Of a DNA stretch of 64,000 nt, positions 1,792-53,160 are shown in pieces. This DNA is from Mytilus edulis (lineage: Eukaryota): NCBI RefSeq assembly GCF_963676685.1, contig NC_092351.1:30938001-31002000 (forward strand). Direction: 5' to 3'. The notes under the pieces were generated by a model that did not search any database, had not been told where the DNA came from, and saw only the letters and a program-made list of their open reading frames with translations. The translations under genes were made by a program, and so were the position numbers. How positions within the stretch are numbered: the stretch's first letter is position 1; each line of letters opens with the position of its first letter.

Positions 1792-4700
1792 ATGTACAAG
1801 ACGTCCGTCTTATTCATATGCTGTATGGCAATATGTTATATTACGCCAACAAGTAAGTGATGTAAATTACGGTAAAAGTATGATATTTCAATTTAGAGGA
1901 CATATAAGTATTTTCAATTAGCAATCTCGTTTTGTTTTTGTTAAGAATTTAAGAAAACATTATAATTATACTGGGAGGTTTTTTAAGGTTACAATTATAA
2001 GACGGAATTTTTACTCAGTAACTCTGTCAATATAGTCTCTAATACATGGTCTGGTACTTAGACACTGCACTCTAATATGGTCTGTTTAACCTTTTTCAAG
2101 GTTTCATATGAAAAGCTATCTGAAAGGTTGTTAGATAATCTTTTGTATTGGCATTATGATAGCATGTACTGTTTGAAAGAAACCCAATATTGTAATATTA
2201 TATGCTAAACAGAACTTGTCAATTACAGGGAAACCTTTTCAGAACATGTTCAAACATTGACCAAAATTTTCTTCCCCCTGCCTTTTTTCAAATTGTTTGG
2301 TACAAAGGTAAAGCAACAAACGCTGGGACCTATTTTACTTTTTTCTTTTTCTTAGCGGAAATTAAAAATAAATCATCACATTATGAAAGACCAAGTTGAT
2401 ATCAATTTGCATTAAAAAAAAGTATCAAAAGTAAAATTAATACACTTTCAAGTTATGGTTAAAATAGATAAAGTTGAATAATTACTTAAAATAAAGATTT
2501 ATGCAGCAGTATTTCTTTTTAAAAATAACGAGTTGTATCGGCAGTATTATTTATAAAGATGCCAAGTCTATGTTGAAGTATTTTTATGAAGATAACTATT
2601 TTAAATATATGTTGCAGCATATATTTGTCTTTCTATAAACACAATGTATATGGCTACTTGTAAAAAATGGAAAACAACATGTTGAATAATTTAATGCATC
2701 CGAAGCTTTTCTGGACTTACCTTCATCAGGAACGCTCAAAGCCAAACATTTGAAATCCGAAGATGGATAAGTACAGAAAATCGTTGAAGAGCTATATGTA
2801 AAAAAAACCTCAAATAAATAGCCAAATTCATCTAAAGCCAACTTGGCCAAAGGAGTTGAAACCTTGAAGCCGTATTATGTGATATTGAATCAATGTATGA
2901 TTTTTTTTGTACAATGTTTTCAGAAGGGCAATGTATATGGCTACCAAAAGCCGCATTGGGTCTTATTGAAATAATGTAGGATTTTTGTCCAATGTTTTCA
3001 GAAGGGCAATATATATGGCTACTAAAAGCCGCATTGGGTCATTTTGATTTAATGTATGATTTTTGTACAATGGCCTGAGGGAGTTGAAACCTTGAAGCCG
3101 TATTATGTGATATTGAATCAATGTATGATTTTTTTTGTACAATGTTTTCAGAAGGGCAATGTATATGGCTACTAAAAGCCGCATTGGGTCATATTGAAAT
3201 AATGTAGGATTTTTGTCCAATGTTTTCAGAAGGGCAATGTATATGGCTACTAAAAGCCGCATTGGGTCATTTTGATTTAGTGTCTGATTTTTGTACAATG
3301 TTTTCAAAAGGGCAATGTATATGGTTACGAAAAGCCGCATTGGGTCTTATTGAAATAATGTAGAATTTTTGTACAATGTTTTCAGAAGGGCAATTCATAT
3401 GGTTACGTAAAGCTGCATTAGGTCATTTTGAATTCATGTATGATTTGTCATTTGTTTTCAGAAGGGTAATGTTTATGGCTACTAAAAGCCGTATTGTGTG
3501 ATGTTGAATAAATGTATGATTTTTTTGTCCAATGTTTTCAGAAGGGCAATGTATATGGCTACTAAAAGCCGCTTTATGTCATAATGAATTAATGTATCAT
3601 GATTTGTCATTTATTTTCAGAAGGGCAATGTTCGTTACCAGATACCTTACATAATCAGTACTTTCGAAGTTATGCTGGTGTTTCTGCTTGGCCTTTTACT
3701 GAGTCTACAGGGCAATTTTTCACTGACTACGTTACCTATAATGGGTTATTCCCAGCGACGTTTTTGTCGGACAGCCCTGATCGATATGACTGCAAACAAA
3801 ATAAAGGAGATTATTATTTGTTTAAGTAAGTTTGAAAATAGTTTAAGACAGAAAATATGAAAATAAAGAATTAAAACATAATGCAGAAAAATCAAATGTA
3901 ACCGAAAGTGAATTGTAAAGATGAGAAAATGATAATCCTTTTAATCGCTATTTTACAAATATTTTTTTTTCTTATTTATGAAGTCGTGTTGATTCTTCAG
4001 AAACGTCACCAGACACAGAAAAAACTAAAATCATTTTATTGATAGATGATTTGTAACATACATAATTTATATTCATTGTAGATCAGAGAATGCCATACTT
4101 GATCAGATTGAAAATAAACATATATTTCTGTGCATGAAACTAACACAAATTGATACAGGGAAATATGCTTTGTATTATTTTCGTGAAACGGGTAAGTAAA
4201 CAGCTGTTTAATTTACAAGTTGGGACAAAAAACTACAAAAGAAACTAAAATGACTTAAAAACTAGAGGCTCTAAAGAGCCTGTGTCGCTCACATTGGTCT
4301 ATGTGCATATAAAACAAAGGACACAGATGGATTCATGACAAAATTGTGTTTTGGTGATGGTGATGTGTTTGTAGATCCTACTTTACTGAACATTCTTGCT
4401 AATTACAATGTTCTCTATCTGTAATATACTTGGCCCTTAAGATACAGAAGAAAATATTTTGTATGAATTTACAAAATATTACCAAATTAATGAAAATTGT
4501 TAAAAATTTACTATAAAGGACAATAACTCATTAAGGGGTCAACTGACCATTTTGGTGATGTTGACTTTTTCTTAGATCTTACTTTGCTGAAAATTATTGC
4601 TGTTTACAGTTTATCTCTATCTATAATAGTATTCAAGATAATAACCAAAAACGGCAAAATTTCTTTAAAAATTACCAATTGGTGGCAGCAACCCAACAAC

Positions 4701-7732: not shown

Positions 7733-9917
7733 GCTTCAACAACACTCTCTCAACTTTTTAGTATTTCATAGCTCATGCTTTTTTTGCTTTAACTATATTG
7801 CTGTTACGAAAATATAAAGACAACACAAGTTTTGGACGATAAAATGATTGCAAATTAATAGAGATCATCTTGGTTCAATCGTCTCAATTGAACCAATTGT
7901 ACTTACGTTATTTAAGAGGCGGATTAAGGGGCAAGGTGCTCAACTCCTTTTGTTGTTGACTATTTAAGGAATCACTGCATCACATGCCACTTCTTATGGT
8001 AGTCAGTGCCTTATAAAAATTTCTGGTCTGCCACTGATAAATCCATTTCTCGGTGCTAATTGCCTAGCTAATTATTATGTATAGAATATGCATCTATATG
8101 GTTAACTCATTTGTATGAAGATCTGGATTACAGAATCGTAAATAAATGGACCCGACAAATAAATTATTAAGAAAAAAAGCAAAAACGAAGAAAAGAAAAT
8201 CAGGGGTTGCTAAAATATATGATGGTGAAGATTAGAAAATTATCGCCAAACAAATACAGAATATTGAAAATACCAAAAGTATAATAGAAAAGAAGACCCC
8301 CACCGCAAAAAAAAATAAAAAAAAAAAAATAAGCCCTCTTTCAGACCTTTCGCGTATCCGTTGCTTTAAAATATTCCGCCTGAGCATCTTCGTTAAATTT
8401 TACTCATAGTACTAGCTACAACTTTAATGTATGGTGTGTGTGACACGTGTTTATTTTCAATATGTTTTTTTAAAGCAAAGCTAATTCTGATCAAGTCATG
8501 AATATGATACTTGTTATCAATTTGTTTGGTGCGTTTGATGTGTTTGGGTTTTTGCCATATGACACATGTTATCGTATTTTTTATTTGTTTGATTTGTTTG
8601 AGTTTTTGATTTTGTCATTTGATTAGGGACTTTCCGTTTGGATTGTCATCGGTGTTCAGATTTTTTTTTGTGATTTTACTTTCTACATATGTTGACCGAA
8701 AGTACACCAAGGTATTAAAACTTGTGATTTAGAAAAAAAACTTTCAAAGAATTCGTATTTTCACATTTTTATAAACTTGTTTGTTATTTTGCATTTTTTT
8801 CTTTCTGTTCATTGCTATAGTAATAAATAGTTGTGCATCTATCGGTTTGTTTTGGTTTTATTGTTAATAATACAATTACAAGTTACACAAGTTTATATAT
8901 ACCTCAAAGTACACACGTCAAAATTTTCTTAGATTTTCAACGATTGGCCATACAATGCATAAATAAAACAAATATAAAAACAAAAGTAACCTGACTTATA
9001 TTCCTAAATATGGTAAGTGCTTTTAACGAATTTAATTCCTCAGAAATTTTGAGAAAAAAAAAGAGAAATTTTAAGGATCTTAAGGTCGTTAGTTATTGAG
9101 AACGATAGGTTTTGAGTCGATATTTATTGTGTCAATATTTTTTGTGTCGATAGTTTTGAGAACGATAATTTTTGAGGTGCTGATGCCTTCATAAAGTTGC
9201 ATATTACTGCTTTGTAATAACAAATATGCTTACCGAAGATCATCACTATGAGCTAGACAATGATCAGCTTGACCTGAGGTTTTTAAAGCCTTCACGGGTA
9301 TGCTGGGTGAAATCAGGAACACAAATTATTCAGTGATTCACTCATAAAATACACAAATACGCGGTAACCCGATAGATTAATTTTCAAATTTAATCATAAT
9401 TAAATGATATAGCAGCCGTCAGTATAGGTTTTCAGAAGACTTCCACGAATAATTATCAGCAATACAAAAATCAAAATAGAGATTTTATTCTATCAAGAAT
9501 AATATTCTATTTGTAGAGTGTTCATTGTTGAAGATGCACATAAAGCTATGTACTTTAGTAGGTGAGCGACACAGACTTTTTAAAGCCTCAAGTTATAAAC
9601 ACTTGGATCCTACCTTAAATAAGATAAATCCAGACTACTTATACACATATGAATATCCCATTTGTTACAAGTAGATATTTGAATTCTGATTTGTAGTGAA
9701 GTAAATTAGTATAAATCCGAATTCCATTTTTTACTTGTACATGTGTAGTAGGAGGATTCATGATCTTAATGCAATCCAATGTGTGCTGTAACATGTGCAT
9801 CCGGAAGTGTCTTGAGCTTAATAGAAGACGCATTTTCAGATAAACTTATTACACATCCTTGCTATACGTATACATTATTTCGGGTTTGTCCTGGTACCTT
9901 TGATTACTATTTACACC

Positions 9918-9975
9918 ACTGGGTCGATGCCACTGCTGTTGGACGTTTCGTCCCCGAGGGTATCACCAGCCCAGT
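9918..9975 (+). ncRNA. Conserved 58-nt pseudoknotted RNA motif of unknown function (retrozyme copy)
   Basis: Gapless homolog of the minus-strand motif in the 157-bp array, with 6 compensatory base-pair changes. Confidence 0.65.
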
Positions 9976-10186
9976 AGTCAGCACTTCAGTGTTGACATGA
10001 ATATTAACTATATGGTCATTTTAAAAAAAATTCTGTTACAAAGCTTCGAAATATTCGAAAAACTAAGGATTTTTTTATCCCAGGAATAGATTACCTTAGC
10101 CGTATTTGGCACATTTTTTTGGAATTTTGGGTCCTCAATGCTCTTCAACTTAGTAATTGTTTGGCTTTATAACTAGATTGATCTGA

Positions 10187-10226
10187 GCGCCACTGAAGAG
10201 TCTTATGTAGACGAAACGCGAGTCTG
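10187..10226 (+). ncRNA. Type I hammerhead ribozyme (3' arm of stem I truncated)
   Basis: CUGAAGA at 10193-10199, stem II GUCU/AGAC, GAAA at 10213-10216, GUC site ending at 10224. Confidence 0.75.
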
Positions 10227-10933
10227 TATCAAAGAGATTGATACCCAACTCAACAAGAATGTGTCCATAGTACACGGATATTCCAAGCACTATAATTTTC
10301 TATGTTCAGTGGACCGTGAAATTGGGGTCAAAACTCAAATGTTGCTTTAAAATTATAAAGATCATATAATAGGGAACATGTGTACTAAGTTTCATGTTCA
10401 AAACTTGGAACATCCAAATGAAACATTCAGATATCTATCCAGTATCGTTTTGACAAACCTTCATGGAACTTTATGAAATAAGGGCAGAATCTTCTTTATG
10501 ATAAAAAGACATTATCGACAGCAGCATTTTGAAACTACTGTTATTTTTTTCATTTTCCGTTTTCATGAATAAATATATCTTTTTTGTCGAGCCTTCGACT
10601 TTTGTCGAAAAAGCGAGACATAGTGATCCTAAATTCCGTCGTGGTCGGCGTCCACAAATATTCACTCTGTGGTTAAAGTTTTTGAAATTATAAAAACTTT
10701 CTTAAACTATCCTGGATTTCTACCAAACTTGGACAAAAGCTTACTTATGATCATAAGATGTTATACAAATGTTGCCATTATTTTATGACAGCTAATGTTT
10801 ATGTATGCATAGTAATTTCTGAACATCTGTTGATGGATCAAACCAACAAAACAGGAGGTCATAAGGTGACATAAGTGGTATGAACAAGCTAGTTTGTTTT
10901 TTGAGAGTTAAAACATATAGTGACTTTAATATG

Positions 10934-11015
10934 TATCAAAGGTACCAGGATTATAATTTAATACACTAGAAGCGCATTTCGTCTACACAAGACTCATCAG
11001 TGACGCTCAGATCAA
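10934..11015 (-). mobile_element. Second retrozyme copy with degenerate hammerhead (10963-11007), split by later insertions; continues at 12276-12334 and 20328-20356
   Basis: Minus strand reads gcgtca-CTGATGA-gtct tgtgt agac-GAAA-tgcgcttc. The downstream pieces match the plus copy (10091-10185) contiguously once the insertions are removed. Confidence 0.75.
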
Positions 11016-12275
11016 ACTAGAGGCTCTCAAGAGCCTGTATCGCTCACTTGACTCTACTTGGGTTTTTGAAATCATATAAAAAAAGATAAAATTTGGCTAC
11101 AAAGTTACAAAACTTGGTCAGCACCTCATAAGGAACAATAATGCTATGTTGGGTTCCATTCCATTCAGTGGTTCTCTAAAAGAAGACTTTTGTATGCATT
11201 TCCCATAGGGTCCTATGTTAAACTAAACCCCCCGCTGGCGGCCATCTTGGATGATGGATCGGCTACAAAGTAACAACTCTTGGTCAGCATCTCATAAGAA
11301 ACATTTATGCTATGTTTGATTTCATTACATCAAGTGGTTCAATTTGAATGTATTTCCCTTAGGGTCCTATGTTAAACAAAGTCCACCAACTGGCGACCAT
11401 CTTGGATGATGGATCGGCGACAAAGTAACATCACTTTGTCAGCATCTCATTGGGAACATTCATACTATGTTTTGTTTCATTCCATTCAGTGGTTCACTAA
11501 AAGAAGACATTTGTATGTATTTCCCATATTGTCCTACGTAAAACTAAGTCCCCTGCTGGCAACCATCTTGGATGATGGATCGGCTACAAAGTAACAACAC
11601 TTGGTCAACACTTCATAAGGAACATTCATGCCATGTTTGGTTTTATTCCATTCAATGGTTCTTTAGAAGAAACCATTTGTTTGCATTTCCCATAGGGACC
11701 TATGTTAAACTAAGTCCCCCGCTAGTGGCCGTCTTGGATGATGGATCGGCTACAAAGAAACAACACTTGGTCAGCACCTCATAAGGATCATTCATGCCAT
11801 GTTTGGTTTCATTCCATTCAGTGGTTCTCTAAAAGAAGTCATTTGTATGCATTTCCCAAAGGGACCTATGTTAAACTAAGTCCCCCGCTGGCGGCCATCT
11901 TGGATCATGGATCGGCTACAAAGTAACAACACTTGGTCAGCACCTCATTAGGGACATTCATGCCATGTTTGGTTTCATTCCATTCAGTGGTTCTCTAAAA
12001 GGAGTCATTTGTATGCATTTCCCATAGAGTCCTATGTTAAACTAAGTTCCCAGATGGCAGACATCTTGGATGATGGATCGGCTACAAAGTAACAACACTT
12101 GGTCAGCATCTCATAAGGAACTTTCATGCCATGTTTGATTTTATTCCATTCAGTGGTTCTCTAGAAGAAGTTCAAAATGTAAAATGTTGACGACGACGAC
12201 GACGGACGACGGACGTCAGACGACGAACCCAAAGTGATGAGAAAAGCTCACTTGGCCCTTCGGGCAGGTGATCTA
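11016..12275 (-). mobile_element. HINE-like element (family A) carrying ~6.5 copies of a 166-bp satellite
   Basis: Terminal hairpin aggctc-tcaa-gagcct, 166-bp period (11406, 11572, 11738), ggcggccatcttgg core, GAC microsatellite, gctcacttggcc...caggtga end. Confidence 0.8.
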
Positions 12276-13228
12276 AAAAGTTATAAAGCCAAACAAATAC
12301 AAAGTTGAAGAGCATTGAGGACCCAAAATTCCAACTTAAGGCTCTGAAGAGCCTGTATCGCTCACCTGACTACTTGGGTTTTTGAAATCATATAAAAAAA
12401 GATAAATTTGGCTACAAAGTAACAACACGTAGCCAGCACCTCATAAGGAAAGGAACATTCATATGTTTGATTTCATTCAATTCAGTGGTTCTCTAGAAGG
12501 AAACTTTTGTATCCTATATTAAACTAAGCCCCCCCCCACCCCCCCTTCCCCGCTAGTGGCCATCTGTGATGATTGATCGGCTACAAAGTATCGACACTTG
12601 GTCAGCATCTCATAAGGAACATTTATGCTATGTTTGGTTTCATTCCATTCAGTGGTTCTTTAAAAGAAGAAATTTGTATGTATTTCCCATAGGGACCTAT
12701 GTTAAACTATTAAGTTCCCCCACTTGCGGCCTTCTTGGAAATTGGATCGGCGACAAAGTTACAACACTTGGTCAGCATCTCATTAGGAACATTCATGCTA
12801 TGTTTGGTTTCATTCCTTTCAGTGGTTCACTAAAAGAAGACATGTGTATGTATTTCCCATAGGGTCCTATGTTAAACTAAGTCCCCCGCTAGCAGCCATC
12901 TTGGATGATGCATCGGCTACAAAGTAACAACACTTGGTCAGCACCTCATAAGGAACATTCATGCTATGTTTGGTTTTTATTCCATTCAGTGGTTCTTTAA
13001 AAGAAGTCATTGTGCTATTTTTAATTAATTAAAAATATATAATTGGCGACTAGAGTTAAAGAAATAGACTTTATACTGTTCGAATTATTTCGGTTCTTTA
13101 CATACAGCTAATGATACAACTTGTTATGAATTTTATAACGTAACAATGCATTCTGATTGGTTCCTTTATATACTTGTGATTTAAAGAATTTTAAGTTTTT
13201 TATTCTGCCGTCGATATCCGAAAACTAA

Positions 13229-14319
13229 AATCAGCGAAAAGAAAAGACACCAGCGACTCCAAAAGTGTTAAAAGGAAGGGTGAGATCAATTTAGACAAAT
13301 TAAGAAAAAAGAAAGTGTTGACTAAATTAGTAGAGAAACAATTATCAGATATTTTAAAAAAGAATAATTTAATAGATTTAGTTGATTCTAGTGAAATTCC
13401 TCATGGTTGTTCTACTAGTGAGCATGATTTTTCTTCGCATTTACGCAAACGTAAAAACAAATCTTTGAAAAAGAAGAGTTCAAAAGTTCCTTTACAATAT
13501 TCTGATTCCGATTCGGACGACAATATTCATGTCCCGAAGGTTTAATCGGCTAAGGCCAAAAAGTTTAAAAAGTCGGGTAGCTCCAGGGTGACAAAACACA
13601 AGTCAAGAGTAATATCAGAGTCATCTGATAGTTCTGACTATGATGCATTCGAGTCTAGTACTGATGATGATACTTAAAGTACATCAGGTACAGATTCGTC
13701 CTGTAAAAAGAAATCACTTAAAAAGCGAAAGGTTAATCGGGTATGGTTGCTAAAGCAAGCGATGACGTGCAGAATCCACAAACTTGGCCCCATACTACAC
13801 TTCAGTACGAATATATAAATAAATCTGTTTCATTTCAAGATTTAGATTTAAAGCTGTTTGTTGCAGGGGAATTAGAAATAATTGGATCAAGCAAAATTAA
13901 AGCTATCGAGAAAATTACTAGATTGTCCCTTTTGAAGAAAATTCTATATTACAGTTCCATTTATCAGTGGAAATCTTTACTTGACTTCTATGCTGCCTTT
14001 TTGAGACAAATTGAAACGGGTGCTAAAACCTGGAAAGATACTCCTGATAATTTGGAAGTTCCTCTTTTATCTAAATATGTCAAACAAGAGTTCGATAAGA
14101 AGCATTCTTTTGGGGCTAAAAAAAGAGACCAAGACACATACTTTATGGTATTGTTCGTTATTTCAGAAAAATAAATGTTCAAAAACATCACCGCATAAAA
14201 TTCTGATTAGAGGTGTTGAACGTGAGGTTAATCATTTTTGTGCCACTTGTTATAGATTAGACAAACTTAAAAGTCATCATCCTGAATGTTCGTCTGCATG
14301 TCCTCATCATAATGAATGA
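13229..14319 (+). pseudogene. Ngaro gag-like ORF (5'-deleted, frameshifted, with stops)
   Basis: Lys/Ser-rich N-terminal part, then WPHTTL..FVAGELEII..FYAAFLRQIE. The C-terminal Cys/His zinc knuckle (CSLFQKNKC..H..HFCATC..HPE..C) is in a different frame. Confidence 0.75.
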
Positions 14320-14409
14320 CTAAATCAACATGTTCAGTTACCTGATTTTCAAAAGACATTATGGGGTTCTAGACATTCACTTAAATGCAGTCTTTGTTGT
14401 AACAGTTAT

Positions 14410-16089
14410 TTGGGTATAGATGATATGCAAAATTTTGTATCTATTCATAACATTGTTAAAAAATCTGGATTGTACAATTTTCAGGGTTGTAGAATTCCAA
14501 TTTACTCTAAAATCAATATTCTTTTTTTAAGAAGTTTGTTACAGAATTACAGTGACGCTCAAGTTTGTGACTTTTTAGAGTATGGATGGCCGGTGGGTCA
14601 CGATGGGAGCCCGTTCAGGTCATCTTTTTCCCGTAATCATTCGGGGGCTGATTTTCCAGATGATATTGCCAAATATTTGAAAAAAGAAAGTTCTTATAAA
14701 GCAATTGTTGGACCATTTAAGGCAAATCCGTTCAGCTGTCCGTCAGCTTTGTCTCCTTTAAATTCCGTTCCTAAAAAGGATTCAACAGAACGCAGAATTA
14801 TTGTTGATTTGAGCTTTCCAGAGGGCGAGGCGGTTAATTCTGGTATTTTCAAAGATCGTTATTTAGGCGATGAAATTTCAGTTTCGTATCCCACGGTTGA
14901 TGATTTTATTATGTTAATTAAGAGTAAAGGTCAAGGTTGCAGAATGTTTAAGAGGGACCTGAAACGGGCTTATAGACAATTAGTCGTTGACCCCGGTGAC
15001 ATCCATCTCTTAGGTTACAAATGGAGATGACACTTGTTTTACGATCGTGTATTAACAATGGGGTTGAGATCTGCTGCATATATATGTATGCGAACAACAA
15101 ATGCTATTGCATTTATATGTCAAAACATGGGTATAGATATTTTGAACTATTTAGATGATTTGGCTGGATGTGATATTCCTTCCAGCAGTGATGATGCTTA
15201 TGCTAAATTGGGTCTTATTTTACAGAATTGTGGCATTGAAGAATCAATTGAGAAGGCTTGTCCGCATAGTACTAAAATGATGTTTATTGGCATTTTATTT
15301 GATTCTGAGAACATGACAATTTCTATTGATACTCAAAGATTGTCAGAGATTCTGCAGTTAGTTTCTAATTGGCTCTGTAGCACAAATTGTACAAAGAGAG
15401 AATTACAATCATTGCTGGGAAAATTAAATTTTGTATCTCAATGTGTGCGTTCTGGCCGAATTTTTGTGTCAAGGCTGTTAAATTGGTTAAGAGATTTTCC
15501 CGATAATGGGAAAATAGTAATTCCAACTGATTTTAAACGTGATTTATTCTGGTGGCAGGAATTTTTGCCTAGTTATAATGGGATTTCTATGATTTTATCT
15601 GATGAATTCTCAAACCCTGATCAATTGTTTTCTGTTGATGCATGTTTGACAGGATGTGGCGGATAAATGGACGGAAGATACTTTCACTGTTCATTTCCGG
15701 AGTTTATTTTAGATCAAAACTTGCATATAAATTTATTAGAGATGTTGACGATTGTAGTAGCCTTGAAATTATGGGGAAAACATTTCACAAATTTAAAGGT
15801 GATTATTTATTGCGATAATATGGTATCAGTACGTGTTTTGAATACAGGCGCCACCAGAAATGAGTTCCTGCAGTAGTGTTTGAGGGAAGTTTGTTGGATT
15901 GCAGCTGTAAATAATTTTGAGTTAAAAGCTAAACATATTTCAGGTTGCAATAATCGTTTACCAGATCTTTTGTCTAGATGGGATTTAGATTATAAATTTC
16001 AGTTAGACTTTTACGAGAGGACAAAAGGCATGTCCCTATTTAGAGATTTGATTTCTAAAGAATTGTTTCAGTTTGAACATATTTGGTAA
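14410..16089 (+). pseudogene. Ngaro reverse transcriptase/RNase H with 3 in-frame stops
   Basis: RT motifs RIIVDLS, KRDLKRAYRQ, MGLRSA, YLDD. RNase H motifs VDAC, HINLLEM, CDN, HISG.NN..PDLLSR. Stops at 15028, 15664 and 15874. Confidence 0.9.
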
Positions 16090-17082
16090 TTGTTTATTCG
16101 TGTATTTGTAGATTTGCAAGTACTAAGACGAGATATGTTTGTGACTAGGATTTCGGCTTTCGCGAAAGGTACTTTGGTTAATTTTAAAACGCAGTGGAGA
16201 GCTTATTTATTGTTTTGTAATTACTTTCATTTAGAACCGTTTGATATTGATTCTGAATTATTATGCACTTATTCCGAGTTTCTCAGTAGAAGTTTCAGAT
16301 CAGCTCAATCTATTCGCAATTATTTAAACGGAGTTAAAGTTCTTTTCCTGTTGTTAGGATTACATGTGGATGTTTTTTCGTCTTACGAATTGAAGTTGAC
16401 GATGAAAGGGTTAGATAGGAAATTAAAACATTTACCTAAACAGGCATTTCCTATTACTTTAGAAATTTTAGGAAAAATTCGTGAACATTTGAATTTGAAT
16501 ACGCCGCTAGATGCGACATATTGGTGTTTATTTCTTTTTGCTTTATTACTTTTAAGCAGGAAGTCTAATTTAGTTCCAGTATCAACCAAGAAATTTGACA
16601 AAAATAAACAACTGTGCAGATGTGATGTTACAGTCTTTCCGTCTCTTATAATAGTTGCATTCAAATGGACAAAAACAATTCAGTTGGGTAATCGTATTTT
16701 AAGGATACCTTTGCTTGCATATCCTCTATCTAAATTTTGCCCAGTAAATGCATATAAAAGGATGTGTTCTTTAAATCCTTGCACGTCAGATGATGCCGCT
16801 TTTTCTTGTAAAAAAAGGGGGAAATGCATACCAATTACTTATAACCAGTTTCAGAATAAACTGAGAGAATTACTTTGTAAAATTGGGTTAAATCCAAATT
16901 TATTTTCTTCCCATAGTTTCCGAAGAGGTGGAGCAACGTTGGCACCGAAAGCAGGGGTTTCTCCTAGTTCTATCCAATTGATGGGTGATTGGAAAAGCAA
17001 TTGCTATACTAAATATATTGTCAGTTCTTTGTCTGATAAAATCAATGTAGCGGAACAAATTAAAGACTTTGTTTTAAAATAA
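16090..17082 (+). CDS. Ngaro tyrosine recombinase
   Basis: Open 330-codon frame with catalytic R (SRKSNL), K (KWTKT), HxxR (HSFRRGG), W (GDW) and Y (TKYI). True start uncertain. Confidence 0.9.
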   Translation: MFIRVFVDLQVLRRDMFVTRISAFAKGTLVNFKTQWRAYLLFCNYFHLEPFDIDSELLCTYSEFLSRSFRSAQSIRNYLNGVKVLFLLLGLHVDVFSSYELKLTMKGLDRKLKHLPKQAFPITLEILGKIREHLNLNTPLDATYWCLFLFALLLLSRKSNLVPVSTKKFDKNKQLCRCDVTVFPSLIIVAFKWTKTIQLGNRILRIPLLAYPLSKFCPVNAYKRMCSLNPCTSDDAAFSCKKRGKCIPITYNQFQNKLRELLCKIGLNPNLFSSHSFRRGGATLAPKAGVSPSSIQLMGDWKSNCYTKYIVSSLSDKINVAEQIKDFVLK

Positions 17083-17085
17083 AAT

Positions 17086-17601
17086 TTGCTCTTTATAGAT
17101 TTTAGGTCTACTCTGGTGTGCGATTCCATAGCCAAGCATGTTAAAACTATTAGAAGGTGTCACTTGCAAGCCTTTCCTGGAGCAAATATTTGGGACATGA
17201 TCAATTTGCTTAATTGTGGAACAATTCAGGTAAATTATGATATAATTCTGATGCATGTAGGAACCAACAATGTTTTTGCTGATTTTGATATAGGCTATAA
17301 TGTGCTTATCTCTACAATTGAGAAATTAGTTAAGCCACATACTGTCATAGTTGTTATGTCAGCAATTATTCCACGCTTACTTGATTTTCAGAATACAAGT
17401 TATTTTGTCACTACTATTAATTCTAGATTAAGAGGTTTATGCTTTAAACGTGGTGTTCAGTTTGTAGCTACTTATAAACCTTTTTTAAAGTTTGGGATGC
17501 CAGTTTGTGAACTTTATTCACCCATCTGTAAGTTACATTTGAATTATTTTGGTAATTTAAAATTGACAAATTTTTTTGTTCAAGTATTGTCTCATTGTTA
17601 A
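17086..17601 (+). CDS. SGNH/GDSL-type hydrolase-like ORF of the Ngaro element
   Basis: Block I (V)CDSI, block II FPGA, block III HVGTNN, block V CKLHLN. No ATG upstream of the Ser motif. Confidence 0.8.
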   Translation: MLFIDFRSTLVCDSIAKHVKTIRRCHLQAFPGANIWDMINLLNCGTIQVNYDIILMHVGTNNVFADFDIGYNVLISTIEKLVKPHTVIVVMSAIIPRLLDFQNTSYFVTTINSRLRGLCFKRGVQFVATYKPFLKFGMPVCELYSPICKLHLNYFGNLKLTNFFVQVLSHC

Positions 17602-17708
17602 ACAAGAGGATGTTAAGTCTCATCTTGTTACTGTTAAACAGAAGGAGCAATCTTATTCTGTGCCTTTTTTGTCTAATTGTGCTTATCCTTAAGGGAACAT
17701 TTTGTTTC

Positions 17709-17892
17709 CTGGCCAATCTTGTCAGAAAGATCTGACCATTCATGTCAGTGGTATTGTTTGATATCTGACCATTCATGTCGGTATTATTATACGTATTTGT
17801 TAGAAATATCTGAACAATCATGTCAGTGATATTTTTTTATTTCTGAACATTCATGTCAGTGATATTTTGTGATTTCTGACCATTCATGTCAG
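17709..17892 (+). repeat. Six spaced palindromic CTGAC-N7-GTCAG motifs in the Ngaro 3' region
   Basis: Copies start at 17709, 17732, 17765, 17810, 17844 and 17876; consensus ctgaccattcatgtcag. Confidence 0.8.
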
Positions 17893-18731
17893 TATTTTCA
17901 TTATTTTTGCTTGTAACTTAAATAGCTTTTAAATTTTGTTTAATATCAATCAATGTGCGTTAGTTACTGTTTGGCTGTTGGGGTTTTTGGTGCTGAACAT
18001 TGATTGGATTAACTTTAACGTCTATTATAGTTTTTTCATATGAAATTGTAATAATTTGCCAAAATTAAATGTTTTATTTTAATTCGTTTTAATTCCTACT
18101 GAGCATTTATTTAGTATTGCTTTGCATCCAGTCGTCTCATATCTTTAATAAATCTGCGTCTATTTACTTCGAAAGAGCAAATTGTGCTATTTTTGATTAA
18201 TTAAAAATATATAATTGGCCACTAGAGATAAAAGAAATAGACTTTATACTGTTCGAATTATTTCGGTTCTTTACATACAGCTAATGATACAACTTGTTAT
18301 GAATTTTATAACATAACAATGCATTCTGATTGGTTCCTTTATATACTTGTGATTTAAAGAATTTTAAGTTTTTCATTCTGCAGTCGATAGCCGAAAACTA
18401 ACCCTCCCATTATTTATCCCACCAAATATTTATAATCAGTAGTTTCAGTCTCATTTTCTGTGAAAGTTTTATTTTTCAGCGTATGTTCCTTGCCGGTGTT
18501 ACTGTGGATATACGAATTTACAATATAATCGACTGATTAAAGGACAATAAAGGAGCAATAGAGTTTATAACCGATAATTTGGATACGGATTAATTCACAA
18601 TGGTGTAGATGTTAGATTTATCGTTGCCCGCTGAATATAGACGTGCGGTCAAAGTGTTGTTGATGAATGGTGGTGCTGAACATTGATTGGATTAACTTTA
18701 ACGTCTATTATTGTTTTTTCATATGAAATTG

Positions 18732-19596
18732 TAAATAAAGGCAACAGTAGTATACCGCTGTTCAAAACTCATAAATCCATGGACAAAAAACAAAATCGGG
18801 GTACTAGTTTTCATGCTGTTAGGCTACCGGACTGGTAGAATCCTCGGGGACAGATTGTCCACCAGCAGAGACTCCGGTCCGGTGGTGATAAATAAAGGCA
18901 ACAGTAGTATACCGCTGTTCAAAACTCATAAATCCATGGACAAAAAACAAAATCGGGGTACTAGTTTTTATGCTGTTAGGCTACCGGACTGGTAGAATCC
19001 TCGGGGACAGATTGTCCACCAGCAGAGATTCCGGTCCGGTGGTGATAAATAAAGGCAACAGTAGTATACCGCTGTTCAAAACTCATAAATTCATGGACAA
19101 AAAACAAAATCGGGGTACTAGTTTTCATGCTGTTAGGCTACCGGACTGGTAGAATCCTCGGGGACAGATTGTCCACCAGCAGAGATTCCGGTCCGGTGGT
19201 GATAAATAAAGGCAACAGTAGTATACCGCTGTTCAAAACTCATAAATCCATGGACAAAAAACAAAATCGGGGTACTAGTTTTTATGCTGTTAGGCTACCG
19301 GACTGGTAGAATCCTCGGGGACAGATTGTCCACCAGCAGAGATTCCGGTCCGGTGGTGATAAATAAAGGCAACAGTAGTATACCGCTGTTCAAAACTCAT
19401 AAATCCATGGACAAAAAACAAAATCGGTGTACTAGTTTTCATGCTGTTAGGCTACCGGACTGGTAGAATCCTCGGGGACAGATTGTCCACCAGCAGAGAT
19501 TCCGGTCCGGTGGTGATAAATAAAGGCAACAGTAGTATACCGCTGTTCAAAACTCATAAATCCATGGACAAAAAACAAATTCGGGGTACTAGTTTT
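18732..19596 (-). repeat. 157-bp tandem array (5.5 units) inserted in Ngaro repeat B2, each full unit carrying the 58-nt pseudoknot motif
   Basis: Near-identical units with period 157 (18813, 18970, 19127, 19284, 19441). Absent from B1. Motif in the first unit is 18826-18883 (-). Confidence 0.95.
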
Positions 19597-22486
19597 AAAA
19601 TTTGCCAAAATTAAATGTTTTATTTTAATTCGTTTTAATTCCTACTGAGCATTTATTTAGTATTGCTTTGCATCCAGTCGTCTCATATCTTTAATATATC
19701 TGCGTCTATTTACTTCGAAAGAGCAAATTTGTATGAATTTCCGATAGGGTCCTATGTTAAACTAAGTCCCCCACTGGTGGCCATCTTGTATGTTGGATCG
19801 ACGACAATGTAACAACACTTGGTCAACATCTCATAAGGAACATTCATGCTATGTTTGATTTCATTCCGTTCAGTGGTTCTCTAAAAGAAGACATTCATAT
19901 CGGTCTTTTGATGTCCTTAAGGACTAAAAGTCTGCATTTGTATGTATTTCCCATAGTGTCCTATGTTGAACTAAGTCCCCCGCTGGCGGCCATCTTGGGT
20001 GATGCATTAGCTACAAAGTAACAACACTTGGTCAGCACCTCATAAGGAACATTCATGCTATGTTTGGTTTCATTCCATTCAGTGGTTCTCTAAAAGAAGT
20101 CATTTGTATGCATTTCACATAGGGTCCTATGTTAAACTCAGTCCCATGCTGGCGGCATCTTGGATGATGGGTCGGCTACAAAGTAACGACACTTGGTCAG
20201 CACCTCATATGGAACATTCATGCTATGTTTTGTTTCATTCCATTCAGGGGTTCTCTAAAAGAAGTCATTTGTATGCATTTCCCATAGGGTCCTATGTTAA
20301 ACTAAGTCCTTCCGGCCAGGTGAGCGAAAAAGTTGTTCCAAATGCGTCTAAGGTAAAAGCGTATTTATAGTAAGTTACTATATTGTATGGGCTTTGCTAA
20401 TTTTTGATACTGATGGATTTATGTCATTGGCAGAGATACCATCTTCTCAGTTTTGTTAACATACCTTTTGAGGCATACAGAAGATTCAATTAGTGCAAAT
20501 AAAGCAGCAAACCAGATTTAGCCACTAATAACAAGCATTTCATGATAGAGGGGATGACACACTTGGGATGTGGGGTAAAGAGGTTAAAAAAATGGGGATG
20601 TAGGAATCAGCTTCCACATACAGATGCTGGATTCATGTATCTAAGACCATGTTCGTGATCATTGTGTACTAGTTTCATAACATTTGGTTGAGACAAACAT
20701 AAGTTAGAGAACAAAAAAGGCAGATTTAGCAATTTTTCCATTTATAAAGGGGCATAACTAAAGAACAGTAAAGGTGATGCCACACACTACTGATCTGTGT
20801 TTTGTGGTCATAAGCATTGTGTATAAGTTTTATAGTATTTGGTTGAGGCAAACTAAAGTTAGAGAACAGAAATATTCAACATTTTGTTTATGTTTATAAA
20901 GGTACATAACTCATGAAAGGTAAGTCATGCCACCTAATTTCAAATTTAAGTTGTGTTTTGTGGTCATAAGCATTGTGTATAAGTCTTAAAGTATTTGGTT
21001 GAGGCAAACTAAAGTAATAAAATGCAAACCAATTTTTCTGATGTTCTGTACGGACTAACATCAGTAACACCTAAGCAAACTATAATACAGTAGGGGCATA
21101 CAATACATAGGATCTTGGAAAATGAAAGTAAAATGTGAAGTGGGAAAAATTACACAAAAAAAAGCTGGATTTAAGAAATCAGAATCCCTGTGTCACAATA
21201 TTAAGGTAATCCAACCATACATGAGAATGAGTTCAATTGTTTACAATTACTTTTAGTTTTGTTTAGGCTAAATTAGTAAGAGTAAAAGTGATTCTTTTTT
21301 CATGTTTTAATTCAGTAAAGGTTCTATTGTATAGTATATAAATTATTGACAATCTTATCAACTTTTAAAACAAATATAATATAACACACATAGCACACAA
21401 ATGACTGCCTTAAAATTGTTTACTGAGGGCAAAATAAAATATAACTCGGTTTCTGTACCTTGTATAACCATTTCATCAAGCATTCTTGAACCAAGAAAAT
21501 TTGAGAAATTAAAAACGGTTAAGAAAAAATATTTAAAAATATAAATTATGTTGGTCTAACTACAACCATAAGACAATAACAATCATACTGTTTAATGCAA
21601 CCAATGTTTAAAAGAACAGGTTTATCATAAAATGCAGGTATAAGCTTAAGATAGCAAACAAATATAATAAATAATATCAATTTGGTATTAATTACATTTG
21701 AATAAAATGAATAATTCTATTTTTAAATATAAAATAATAATGAAAACAAAAACGTAAAACGAAATGTATATAAGATTTCATACTTGGATATTCAATTGTC
21801 CTATTATTTTATTTTTTTCAACTATTTTATAAAATACAATATAAAGTAACATTTTGCAAATGACATTAATCTATAATGCTAAATGAGGACAATAAATATC
21901 TTAGCACCATCAGGATATATATAAATGATATGTTCTAATACATTATTGTTTGCAATATACAATTTGACATGAAGTCAACACATCATTTATTCATAAAAAA
22001 GTTGTCTGCACCAAGGAAAGGTCTTTAAAAGAAATAAAGTTGTTTACATTTTGGTATAATTTAATTTCAGATGTAACACTTCTTCTCATTGGAGCTTTTT
22101 GTCTATCAGCTCATAGACGTAATTTTGTCATTTGACCATGATGTCATCAATGTTATTTTTAATGATATACACCTTTAAGACGAAATAAGAATTAAATTAT
22201 AAGGAATGACTGTAATATTTTTTCTATCTATTCAAAATAACCTAAAATATATGGTGCACAATGAATAACCCAAGTAACAGGTTATTTATAAGTGTGCACC
22301 ACATTAGACAGAAAAAAATATTGCAGTCATTCCTTAAATAACATCAGGATAAGACATTCAAAGTACAGCAATTTCCATCAAAAAAGTATAAAGTTTAAAT
22401 TTGTTATATTTTTAAAATAAATGTACATATGTTATCAACTTTGATAAATCACTTTGCGTATACTGTAAAAAGATTATATCATTTAA

Positions 22487-51949: not shown

Positions 51950-53160
51950 TTAAGGAAATTTTGCCGATTTTTGGTCATTATCTTGAATATTATTATAGAT
52001 AGAGATAAACTGTAAAGAGCAATATTGTTCAGCAAAGTAAAATCTACAAATAAGTCGACATGACCAAAATGGTCAGTTTGTTTCTTAAGGAGTTATTGCC
52101 CTTTATAGTCAATTTTTAACAGTTTAAAAAAAAATTTGTAATCTTTTACAAAAATCTTCTCCTCTGAAACTACTGAGACAAATTTAACCAAACTTGTCCA
52201 CAATCATCATTCGGGTATATAGTTTTTAATTTGTGTTCGATGACCCCGCCCGTGAACCAAAATGGCCGACATGGCTCAAAATAGTACATAGGGTAAAATG
52301 CAGTTTTTTGCTCATATCTTAGAAACCAAAGTATTTGGAGCAAATATGACAGGATAATATTGTTCATTAGGTTCAGATCTATCTGCCCTAACATTTATAC
52401 CATTCAGGCAACCCGTTCTTGGGTTCCTACCCCTGAATTGGTAATTTTAAGAAAATTTTGCAGCTTTTGGTTAATATCTTAAATATTATTATAGATGGAG
52501 AATAACCGTAAACAGCAATAATGTACATTGAGGTAAGACCTAAAAATAAGTCAAAATGACCAAAATGGTCAATTGATCCCTTAAGGAGTTATTGCCCTTT
52601 ATAGTCAATTTTTAACAATTTTCTTTAATTTTGTAATTTAAAAAAATGTTATACACTTTAACTACTGGACCAAGTTGAATGTTCCTTAAATTCTTGACTT
52701 ACATCTAATTTATAATTACGGACGCCATCACGAGTTGGTTGACCGTTATGGAATAACCGTTTCACAAATGATATCGGATATGTTCCTTACGTCGTGACTA
52801 CAATCCCCTTCCCTTTCATGAATGTGACCTACCGAATTAGACTATTTACCGGATTTGTTATCACATAAGCAACACGACGGGTGCCACATGTGGAGGAGGA
52901 TCTGCTTACCATTCTGGAGCACCTGAGCCAGTTTTTGGTGGGGTTCGTGTTGCTTATTCTTTAGTTTTCTATGTTGTGTCATGCGTACTATTGGTTGTCT
53001 GTTTGTCTTTTTCATTTTTAGCCATGGCGTTGTCAATTTATTTTCAATTTATTAAGTTGACTGTCCCTCTGGTATCTTTCGTCCCTCTTTTAAAGATAGA
53101 GATAATTGTAAGCAGCAAGAAATAAAGTAAGATCTCAATCACATCACCATCACCAAAACA
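51950..53160 (+). mobile_element. Partial HINE-like family A element interrupted by a retroelement 3' end (~52715-53090)
   Basis: Reverse complement of the 29287 internal unit. The insert encodes YGRHHELVDRYGITVSQM, resembling an RT C-terminus (inferred Penelope-like). Confidence 0.55.

Follow-up and report, generated by a model that had tools for sequence, protein, structure and literature searches.

The present locus bears on the question of which autonomous element mobilises the hammerhead retrozymes of animals, and by what signal. In a window of 64,000 nucleotides of mussel DNA (the whole stretch analysed), a 58-nt motif is common to a hammerhead retrozyme and to a tandem array of short units. 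An initial annotation, made from the letters alone, drew this motif as a covarying pseudoknot and proposed either a new ribozyme or a recognition element for the reverse transcriptase (RT) of a Penelope-like element (PLE). The window holds one copy on the plus strand and five on the minus strand at a spacing of 157 nt. We refer to the motif below as the head, for reasons that will become clear:

9918-9975, plus strand: head hairpin of the F1 retrozyme copy (86.3 bits)
18826-18883, minus strand: head hairpin in the array's 3'-most complete unit, with an A>G variant giving G12.U44 (79.2 bits, model R1)
18983-19040, minus strand: head hairpin copy (79.6 bits)
19140-19197, minus strand: head hairpin copy (covariance-model match)
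19297-19354, minus strand: head hairpin copy (covariance-model match)
19454-19511, minus strand: head hairpin copy (covariance-model match)

These are the sites that had been announced. The alignment of the retrozyme copy with the array unit is indeed ungapped over 58 nt, and the two do have flanking sequences in common. Dinucleotide shuffles of the window contain no copy, that is, the chance expectation is zero. The motif is much more widespread than the two families in one window from which it was described. The 1.37-Gb genome contains 14,554 matches to its core pattern and a further 1,630 to a variant core, whereas reversed-pattern controls give none; the total is about 16,200 copies in at least seven families, most copies falling in a few young families. 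A covariance-model search of the genome returned, among the matches listed, only top-scoring identical copies. Marine and estuarine metagenomes also contain the exact 22-base core, on 18 contigs. No description of the element was found in the PLE and retrozyme literature cited here.

Two motif copies 3370 nt apart led to an autonomous element. This locus (L031) is a tandem of 3370-nt units; every unit encodes 995 aa in an ORF that runs on the same strand as the motif. The protein of this family (F3) has a GIY-YIG motif (VVYGLEC...VYVGET) near its N-terminus and an RT near its C-terminus; by prediction, this is the permuted architecture of a Naiad, with GIY-YIG N-terminal and RT C-terminal. In two related elements described below, L078 and Naiad-B, Pfam GIY-YIG scores 24.1 and 23.8 bits at aa 135-225 (cut-off 22.6), and RVT_1 scores 22.8 and 21.7 bits at aa 640-856, below its threshold of 29.6. 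Craig et al. 2021 (PMC8557442) describe Naiads as dominant in bivalve genomes, as devoid of canonical hammerheads and as inserting preferentially in (TA)n; the other PLE clades have hammerheads, most Chlamys excepted (PMC8557442). An Rfam search likewise found no hammerhead in the Naiad junction region. More than 130 near-identical F3 copies were scored in the genome, many with intact frames of about 1000 aa, and the family is young and abundant. A protein search of the genome for further Naiad families gave, among the matches listed, only F3's own family.

Other autonomous families carry the same motif. In Naiad-B, which carries the array's variant of the head, the N-terminal half is open over 496 codons and includes GIY-YIG; the ORF DNA of Naiad-B is about 65% identical to that of F3. 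Among metagenomic loci, L078 is an intact Naiad with 60% protein identity, whose head has compensatory changes in P0 and PA, and L071 is a Naiad at 78% identity with an identical layout of tail, head and ATG. A Naiad fragment at C8:81.58 Mb (42% identity) has no head, but is itself 5'-truncated. More distant Naiad proteins, at 33-47% identity, are present in the protein collection.

The position of the motif within the unit can be read from the ends of these elements. In tandem and pseudo-LTR copies, the head starts 4-5 nt beyond the point where the previous unit ends (...UAUUUAYCACC). The last tandem unit of L031 keeps its homology as far as ...CTCTTTTATTACC and loses it precisely at the point where another head would follow. 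This makes the motif the opening segment of the unit, and the upstream flank noticed in the initial annotation corresponds to the 3' terminus of a unit. Seven full-length copies were examined, and in every one the sequence just upstream is a unit lacking its 5' part (130-1370 nt) and joined by the same tail-head junction; this layout of partial unit followed by full unit is the classic pseudo-LTR (pLTR) arrangement of PLEs. On the other side, the distance from head to ATG is 11-17 nt in the three autonomous families read as DNA (17 nt in the L031 family), and the downstream flank "caugaa" turns out to be the Naiad start codon. A second hairpin, PD, directly follows the head, and the two occupy the entire stretch before the AUG in all three of these families. 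In the window, PD is found in the retrozyme copy, and a Naiad tail is also present:

9977-9999, plus strand: hairpin PD (GUCAGCAC UUCA GUGUUGAC), then the conserved AUG (9997-9999)
52716-53092, plus strand: 3' tail of Naiad F3, 5'-truncated, 92% identity, unit positions 2982-3365 of 3370

PD also covaries (GUCAACA/UGUUGAC, GCCAGUAC/GUACUGGC, GUCAGUAC/GUACUGAC, GCAA/UUGC). The AUG after PD is kept in all non-coding derivatives (window 9997-9999; L005, L007, L028, L065-L079), where stops follow 2-17 codons later. The F3 tail at 52716-53092(+) stops 5 nt short of the head position. We also note a block, GAUUUAUGAGUUU, common to F3 and Naiad-B tails about 40 nt before the unit end and absent from retrozyme tails; it lies in the region L031:4376-4400(-) and at about 18920-18935(-) in the window.

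The array can be accounted for on this basis:

18732-19596, minus strand: tandem array of 5.5 "mini-Naiad" units of 157 nt, 98.7-99.4% identical to Naiad-B
18884-18958, minus strand: 75-nt segment of the Naiad-B 3' tail, its terminus UAUUUAUCACC abutting the head
18802-18825, minus strand: 24 nt after the head kept from Naiad-B, with the start codon ATG at 18814-18812

Comparison with Naiad-B loci (L034, L048, L049) resolves the 157-nt unit into the first 82 nt of Naiad-B (the head plus 24 nt including the ATG) and its last 75 nt. The unit is thus, judging by its sequence, an internally deleted mini-Naiad. The first unit of the array is 5'-truncated and the array ends (...TTTATTTA) a few nt short of the next head position, both as expected if a multimeric or circular template is copied by target-primed reverse transcription. 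An Rfam search found no hammerhead in the array, which is not a retrozyme. In a second mini-Naiad, 79 nt from the 3' end of F3 and 124 nt from its 5' end alone form a tandem unit of 201 nt (L041/L042, at G000:C1:68129036 and 68129237). The core of the array (family F4) is also found with different spacings, one locus having about 279 nt. A satellite of about 166 nt near the retrozyme copy and the array (11095-13011, 19727-20309) is without the head motif.

Retrozymes present a different body with the same ends. Metazoan non-LTR retrozymes are defined by a type I hammerhead, tandem repeats of about 170-400 nt and expression as circRNA; families F1, F2 and F6, with a hammerhead every 350-355 nt, belong here. 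The window has one such copy:

9889-10226, plus strand: one circularly permuted F1 retrozyme monomer, positions 327 to 310
9907-9917, plus strand: unit 3' terminus (CUAUUUACACC), abutting the head
10191-10226, plus strand: type I hammerhead of the F1 retrozyme copy (21.2 bits; Rfam threshold 34)

In a retrozyme, about 47 nt lie between the hammerhead cleavage site and the head. Retrozymes and Naiads have in common the head and the last ~10 nt, and nothing else is alike. The retrozyme and the array, described at the outset as otherwise unrelated, thus both emerge as Naiad derivatives. We compared 35 independent retrozyme insertions: the 3' end of 28 falls in the 8 nt that precede the head, and no insertion continues beyond head position 1. 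The 5' ends are scattered, except for six of the 35 at head positions 5-13, corresponding to one or two whole units; these 5' counts are biased, as the loci were chosen for containing the motif core. The window copy, 9889-10226(+), and L004 (268 to 269) are exceptions, being circularly permuted single units; the window copy is also atypical in ending at the hammerhead cleavage site. Both resemble cDNA made from RNA that was circular or had been cut by the hammerhead, with priming at non-canonical sites. Some 700 nt away from the sense copy of the window, at 10928-11019(-), is a retrozyme fragment in inverted orientation and truncated at its 5' end (monomer positions 258-349); it contains a hammerhead-like site at 10971-11009, and such an inverted arrangement is typical of PLE insertions. 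Vertebrate retrozymes derive from PLE pLTRs (preprint 2026, 10.64898/2026.07.22.740005).

We assessed the fold of the head in a first set of six sequences from five families and in a larger set of 23 sequences, 18 of them from metagenome contigs. The six-sequence set has 98.5% of cells paired and six pairs changed on both sides, a level of double-sided change reached by none of 500 shuffles. The larger set has eight pairs changed on both sides, all within helices P0, PA or PC; families F6 and F7 contribute a change from C-G to G.U at pair 27/33 and one from A-U to U-A at pair 28/32. G.U pairs far exceed A.C pairs (49 versus 8), which identifies the folded strand as the hammerhead/ORF-sense strand, as had been argued from G-U wobbles; the A>G variant in the copy at 18826-18883 does produce a G.U pair.

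Covariation holds for P0, PA and PC. It fails for PB (19-23/48-52), the helix that would form the pseudoknot with PA: no PB pair is changed on both sides, and PB is 82% paired. Pair 20/51 is open in 11 of 20 distinct sequences, an active Naiad family included. Positions 48-52 read AUCCG in the highly active Naiad F3 and UGUCG in the intact element L078, where PB is abolished. Furthermore, position 52 would be an A according to the protein P0008, and an A there is compatible with pairing 7/52 but not with 19/52. With PB devoid of covariation, mismatched in active elements and lost in L078, we dropped the H-type PA/PB pseudoknot. RNAfold and RNAalifold give one identical nested hairpin for every family (-24 to -28 kcal/mol), and this nested pairing is the minimum free energy (MFE) and alifold consensus in all of them:

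P0, 1-7/52-58, and PA, 9-14/42-47: outer helices, with positions 48-51 bulged
C16-G41, U17-A40, U20.G39, G21-C38, G22-C37: mid helix
PC, 24-28/32-36: inner part

Pair 7/52 varies consistently as U.G, C-G and U-A, the last inferred from P0008. The mid helix is made by bases of the supposed linkers pairing with one another; the linkers are invariant, as initially observed, but are paired together in the MFE and alifold structures rather than single-stranded. Since the mid helix is invariant, covariation cannot speak for or against it. The internal-loop bases CUGCUGGUGGA and CCCGAGG are invariant in the head, whereas GGAC/GUCC varies in families F6 and F7. The head is best drawn as a single irregular nested hairpin, with a predicted P0 of 7 bp, PA of 6 bp and PC of 5 bp. 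We also considered that the head might be coding sequence. Gene callers translate it in differing frames in Naiad families at 55-60% identity (P0006, P0008 and P0056, drawn from a collection of 5.8 billion proteins); conservation is therefore at the nucleotide rather than the peptide level, and we rejected a coding role.

Taken together, the 58-nt hairpin appears to be the conserved 5' head of Naiad-type PLEs and of small parasitic repeats, the non-autonomous derivatives (mini-Naiads and retrozymes) keeping the head, a short 3' terminus and little else. Our preferred reading, held with moderate confidence, is that the head is an element acting in cis, for recognition and as the boundary of the unit, and that the Naiad RT would use it to mobilise its own RNA and that of its parasites. 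Of the two functions initially proposed, recognition by a PLE RT gains from the position of the motif as the 5' head of Naiads and from its retention by derivatives, while the ribozyme gains nothing; the head is most likely a tag recognised by the Naiad enzyme rather than a new ribozyme.

The mechanism may be pictured as follows. The Naiad RT/EN would pick its template, either its own mRNA or a parasitic RNA, via the head, which would also mark the unit boundary. The head-bound enzyme would start cDNA on the A/U-rich terminus immediately 5' of the head, a terminus that could anneal to a nicked A/T-rich target. The template would be a circular RNA (for retrozymes, formed via the hammerhead and a ligase) or a multimeric RNA; one full turn would stop inside the head and more turns would yield tandem arrays. 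We infer recognition by the RT from architecture alone. In loci with a partial unit followed by a full unit, no head follows the tail of the full unit; initiation would thus need circular or multimeric RNA, or a contact between 5' and 3' ends. The conserved AUG in non-coding derivatives hints at a translation-linked role, which the recognition model leaves unexplained.

This last observation also belongs to the first alternative, in which the head acts mainly in expression, either as a 5'-UTR for cap-independent translation or, as DNA, as an internal promoter or start-site determinant. The head and PD do fill the interval up to the AUG in three autonomous families, and the AUG is kept even where there is nothing to translate. 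A hairpin of -24 to -28 kcal/mol at a capped 5' end would block scanning and favour a special mode of initiation. Abundant sense-strand retrozyme RNA needs a promoter within the ~355-nt unit, and the head is one of only two G+C-rich conserved retrozyme blocks. However, compensatory changes and strand-specific G.U pairs are seen in elements without an ORF, and the retention of the head by such elements indicates an RNA-level role other than ORF translation. The pLTRs before full copies are 130-1370 nt long, so that transcripts and templates cross the junction rather than start there. Neither a tRNA-like gene (ARAGORN on 9500-20000) nor an A/B box was found, which also led us to reject a tRNA-derived SINE head in that interval. 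We consider a role mainly in expression unlikely.

RNA data bear on expression and on the ribozyme alike. Four raw RNA-seq runs, three of them stranded, were mapped to retrozyme L017. All four cover the retrozyme deeply, and reads cross the tail-head junction at full depth. In the three stranded runs, the first mate is on the minus strand 5-10 times more often, consistent with sense-strand RNA. Many reads depart from the reference after L017:1834-1836 into heterogeneous A/T-rich sequence; this point coincides with the 3' boundary seen in the genome, 5-7 nt upstream of the head. At L017:1754 and 1800, many reads match the F1 hammerhead region only, and then the published circRNA consensus (F6); in these runs, F6 may have the highest expression of the retrozyme families.

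A second alternative, which we regard as very unlikely, is that the head is a new class of self-cleaving ribozyme cutting at its own 5' edge, the tail-head junction. It would free unit-length RNAs from tandem transcripts and replace the hammerhead that Naiads, unlike all other PLE clades save most Chlamys, do not have. The head is placed exactly at the unit junction, it has invariant bases within a covarying fold, insertion 3' ends stop by head position 1 while "full-length" copies start at 5-13, a pattern that RNA ends at the junction would produce, and it lies just before the AUG, as do the HDV-like ribozymes of R2 and RTE (cited in PMC13725137). Against this, the four RNA-seq runs show no pile-up of molecule ends above threshold at the junction; the hammerhead control site is equally blank, so the test is not discriminating and this absence is weak evidence. 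Mussel gonad circRNA, as cloned, keeps the junction intact: the consensus and the T7 construct Mg353 have an intact junction and a complete head, with the PC variant GGAGA UUUA UUUCU in Mg353 (Cervera and de la Pena 2020 supplement). One cloning primer of the 2020 study starts at the end of PD and the AUG, beside the head. In that study, the 353-nt Mg353 monomer was freed by two hammerheads, gel-purified, circularised with RtcB and then exposed to 10 and 50 mM Mg2+; linear, circular and dimeric species are indicated, and no others. This behaviour weighs against efficient self-cleavage by the head, as an argument from silence.

Nor does the motif resemble a known ribozyme, and the pseudoknot that suggested one is unsupported. 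It had been said not to map onto hammerhead, HDV, twister, twister-sister, pistol or hatchet, and an Rfam screen proposed as a check of novelty agrees: no family matches the motif at the gathering threshold in the whole window, nor by cmscan at E up to 10 in 8500-21000 and the Naiad junction. A hammerhead was rejected, as the core CUGANGA...GAAA...UH is missing from the 58 nt and no Rfam hammerhead matches them at E up to 10. An HDV-like fold, defined by a nested double pseudoknot (P1/P2 and P3/P1.1), a catalytic C in J4/2 and cleavage 5' of P1, was rejected for want of an HDV-like/CPEB3 Rfam match and of a conserved P2 3' strand after PD; taking PD as P4 likewise leaves P2 without a partner. 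Twister, twister-sister, pistol, hatchet and hairpin ribozymes were detected by cmscan neither at the two motif sites nor at the Naiad junction. A Twister-P5 search of the genome gave no match among 79 candidates scored, and the F3 junction region is likewise free of Rfam twister matches. We also considered and rejected a K-turn, as well as an RNase P or tRNA-like substrate. A ribozyme that cleaves itself, or cleaves and ligates, in place of the hammerhead would have to be silent in vitro or in need of the Naiad context or a cofactor, and we give this version an equally small chance.

Finally, we give scarcely any credence to the idea that the motif has no function of its own and is common only through recent descent from one Naiad terminus: the mini-Naiad unit and its parent do show about 99% identity, and a few young families account for most genome copies, but loops and stems persist between Naiads at 60% protein and ~65% ORF DNA identity, eight pairs are changed on both sides with pairing kept, and retrozyme bodies have nothing else in common with Naiads.

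The literature assumes that canonical hammerhead-bearing PLEs mobilise the hammerhead retrozymes of animals. Mussel retrozymes and their likely partner have no hammerhead in common; what they have in common with Naiads is a covarying 58-nt hairpin and a 10-nt terminus, and hammerhead-less Naiads are the commonest PLEs of bivalves. Abundant hammerhead-less tandem arrays are explained as mini-Naiads, and the covariance model of the head can be used for annotating such repeats. The head also offers a concrete, mutable RNA element for studying template choice by a telomerase-related RT.

Known systems provide partial parallels. In LINE-SINE pairs such as eel UnaL2/UnaSINE1, a common 3' stem-loop allows mobilisation in trans. 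As in these pairs, a short structured RNA is common here to an autonomous RT element and to non-coding parasites whose bodies have been replaced. Unlike them, the large structure occupies the 5' end of the unit, where it meets the 3' end of the one before, and what head-bearing elements have in common at the 3' terminus is limited to ~10 nt; moreover, the partner is a Penelope-like element, and the parasites include hammerhead circRNAs.

Another parallel is provided by the hammerheads of PLE pLTRs and metazoan retrozymes (PMC4209133, PMC7229834), which are also structured RNAs at a junction and also occur in tandem non-autonomous derivatives. The head differs in having neither a hammerhead core nor an Rfam match, and no cleavage is seen; in mussel retrozymes, it coexists with a hammerhead ~47 nt upstream. 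HDV-like ribozymes are found at the 5' end of R2, RTE and L1Tc (Ruminski 2011, Eickbush 2010, as cited in PMC13725137). The head resembles them as a compact structure at the exact 5' boundary, just before the start codon. Unlike HDV, it has no nested double pseudoknot, P2 partner, J4/2 cytosine context or Rfam match, and self-cleavage is not indicated.

A last parallel concerns the enzyme. In telomerase RNA, a template boundary element and a pseudoknot flank the template. PLE RTs are sister to TERT (PMC8557442). The head differs from telomerase RNA in that it is copied into cDNA as part of the unit; by analogy alone, like the RNA that flanks the telomerase template, an RT-binding structure beside a short A/U-rich start would fix the site of initiation.
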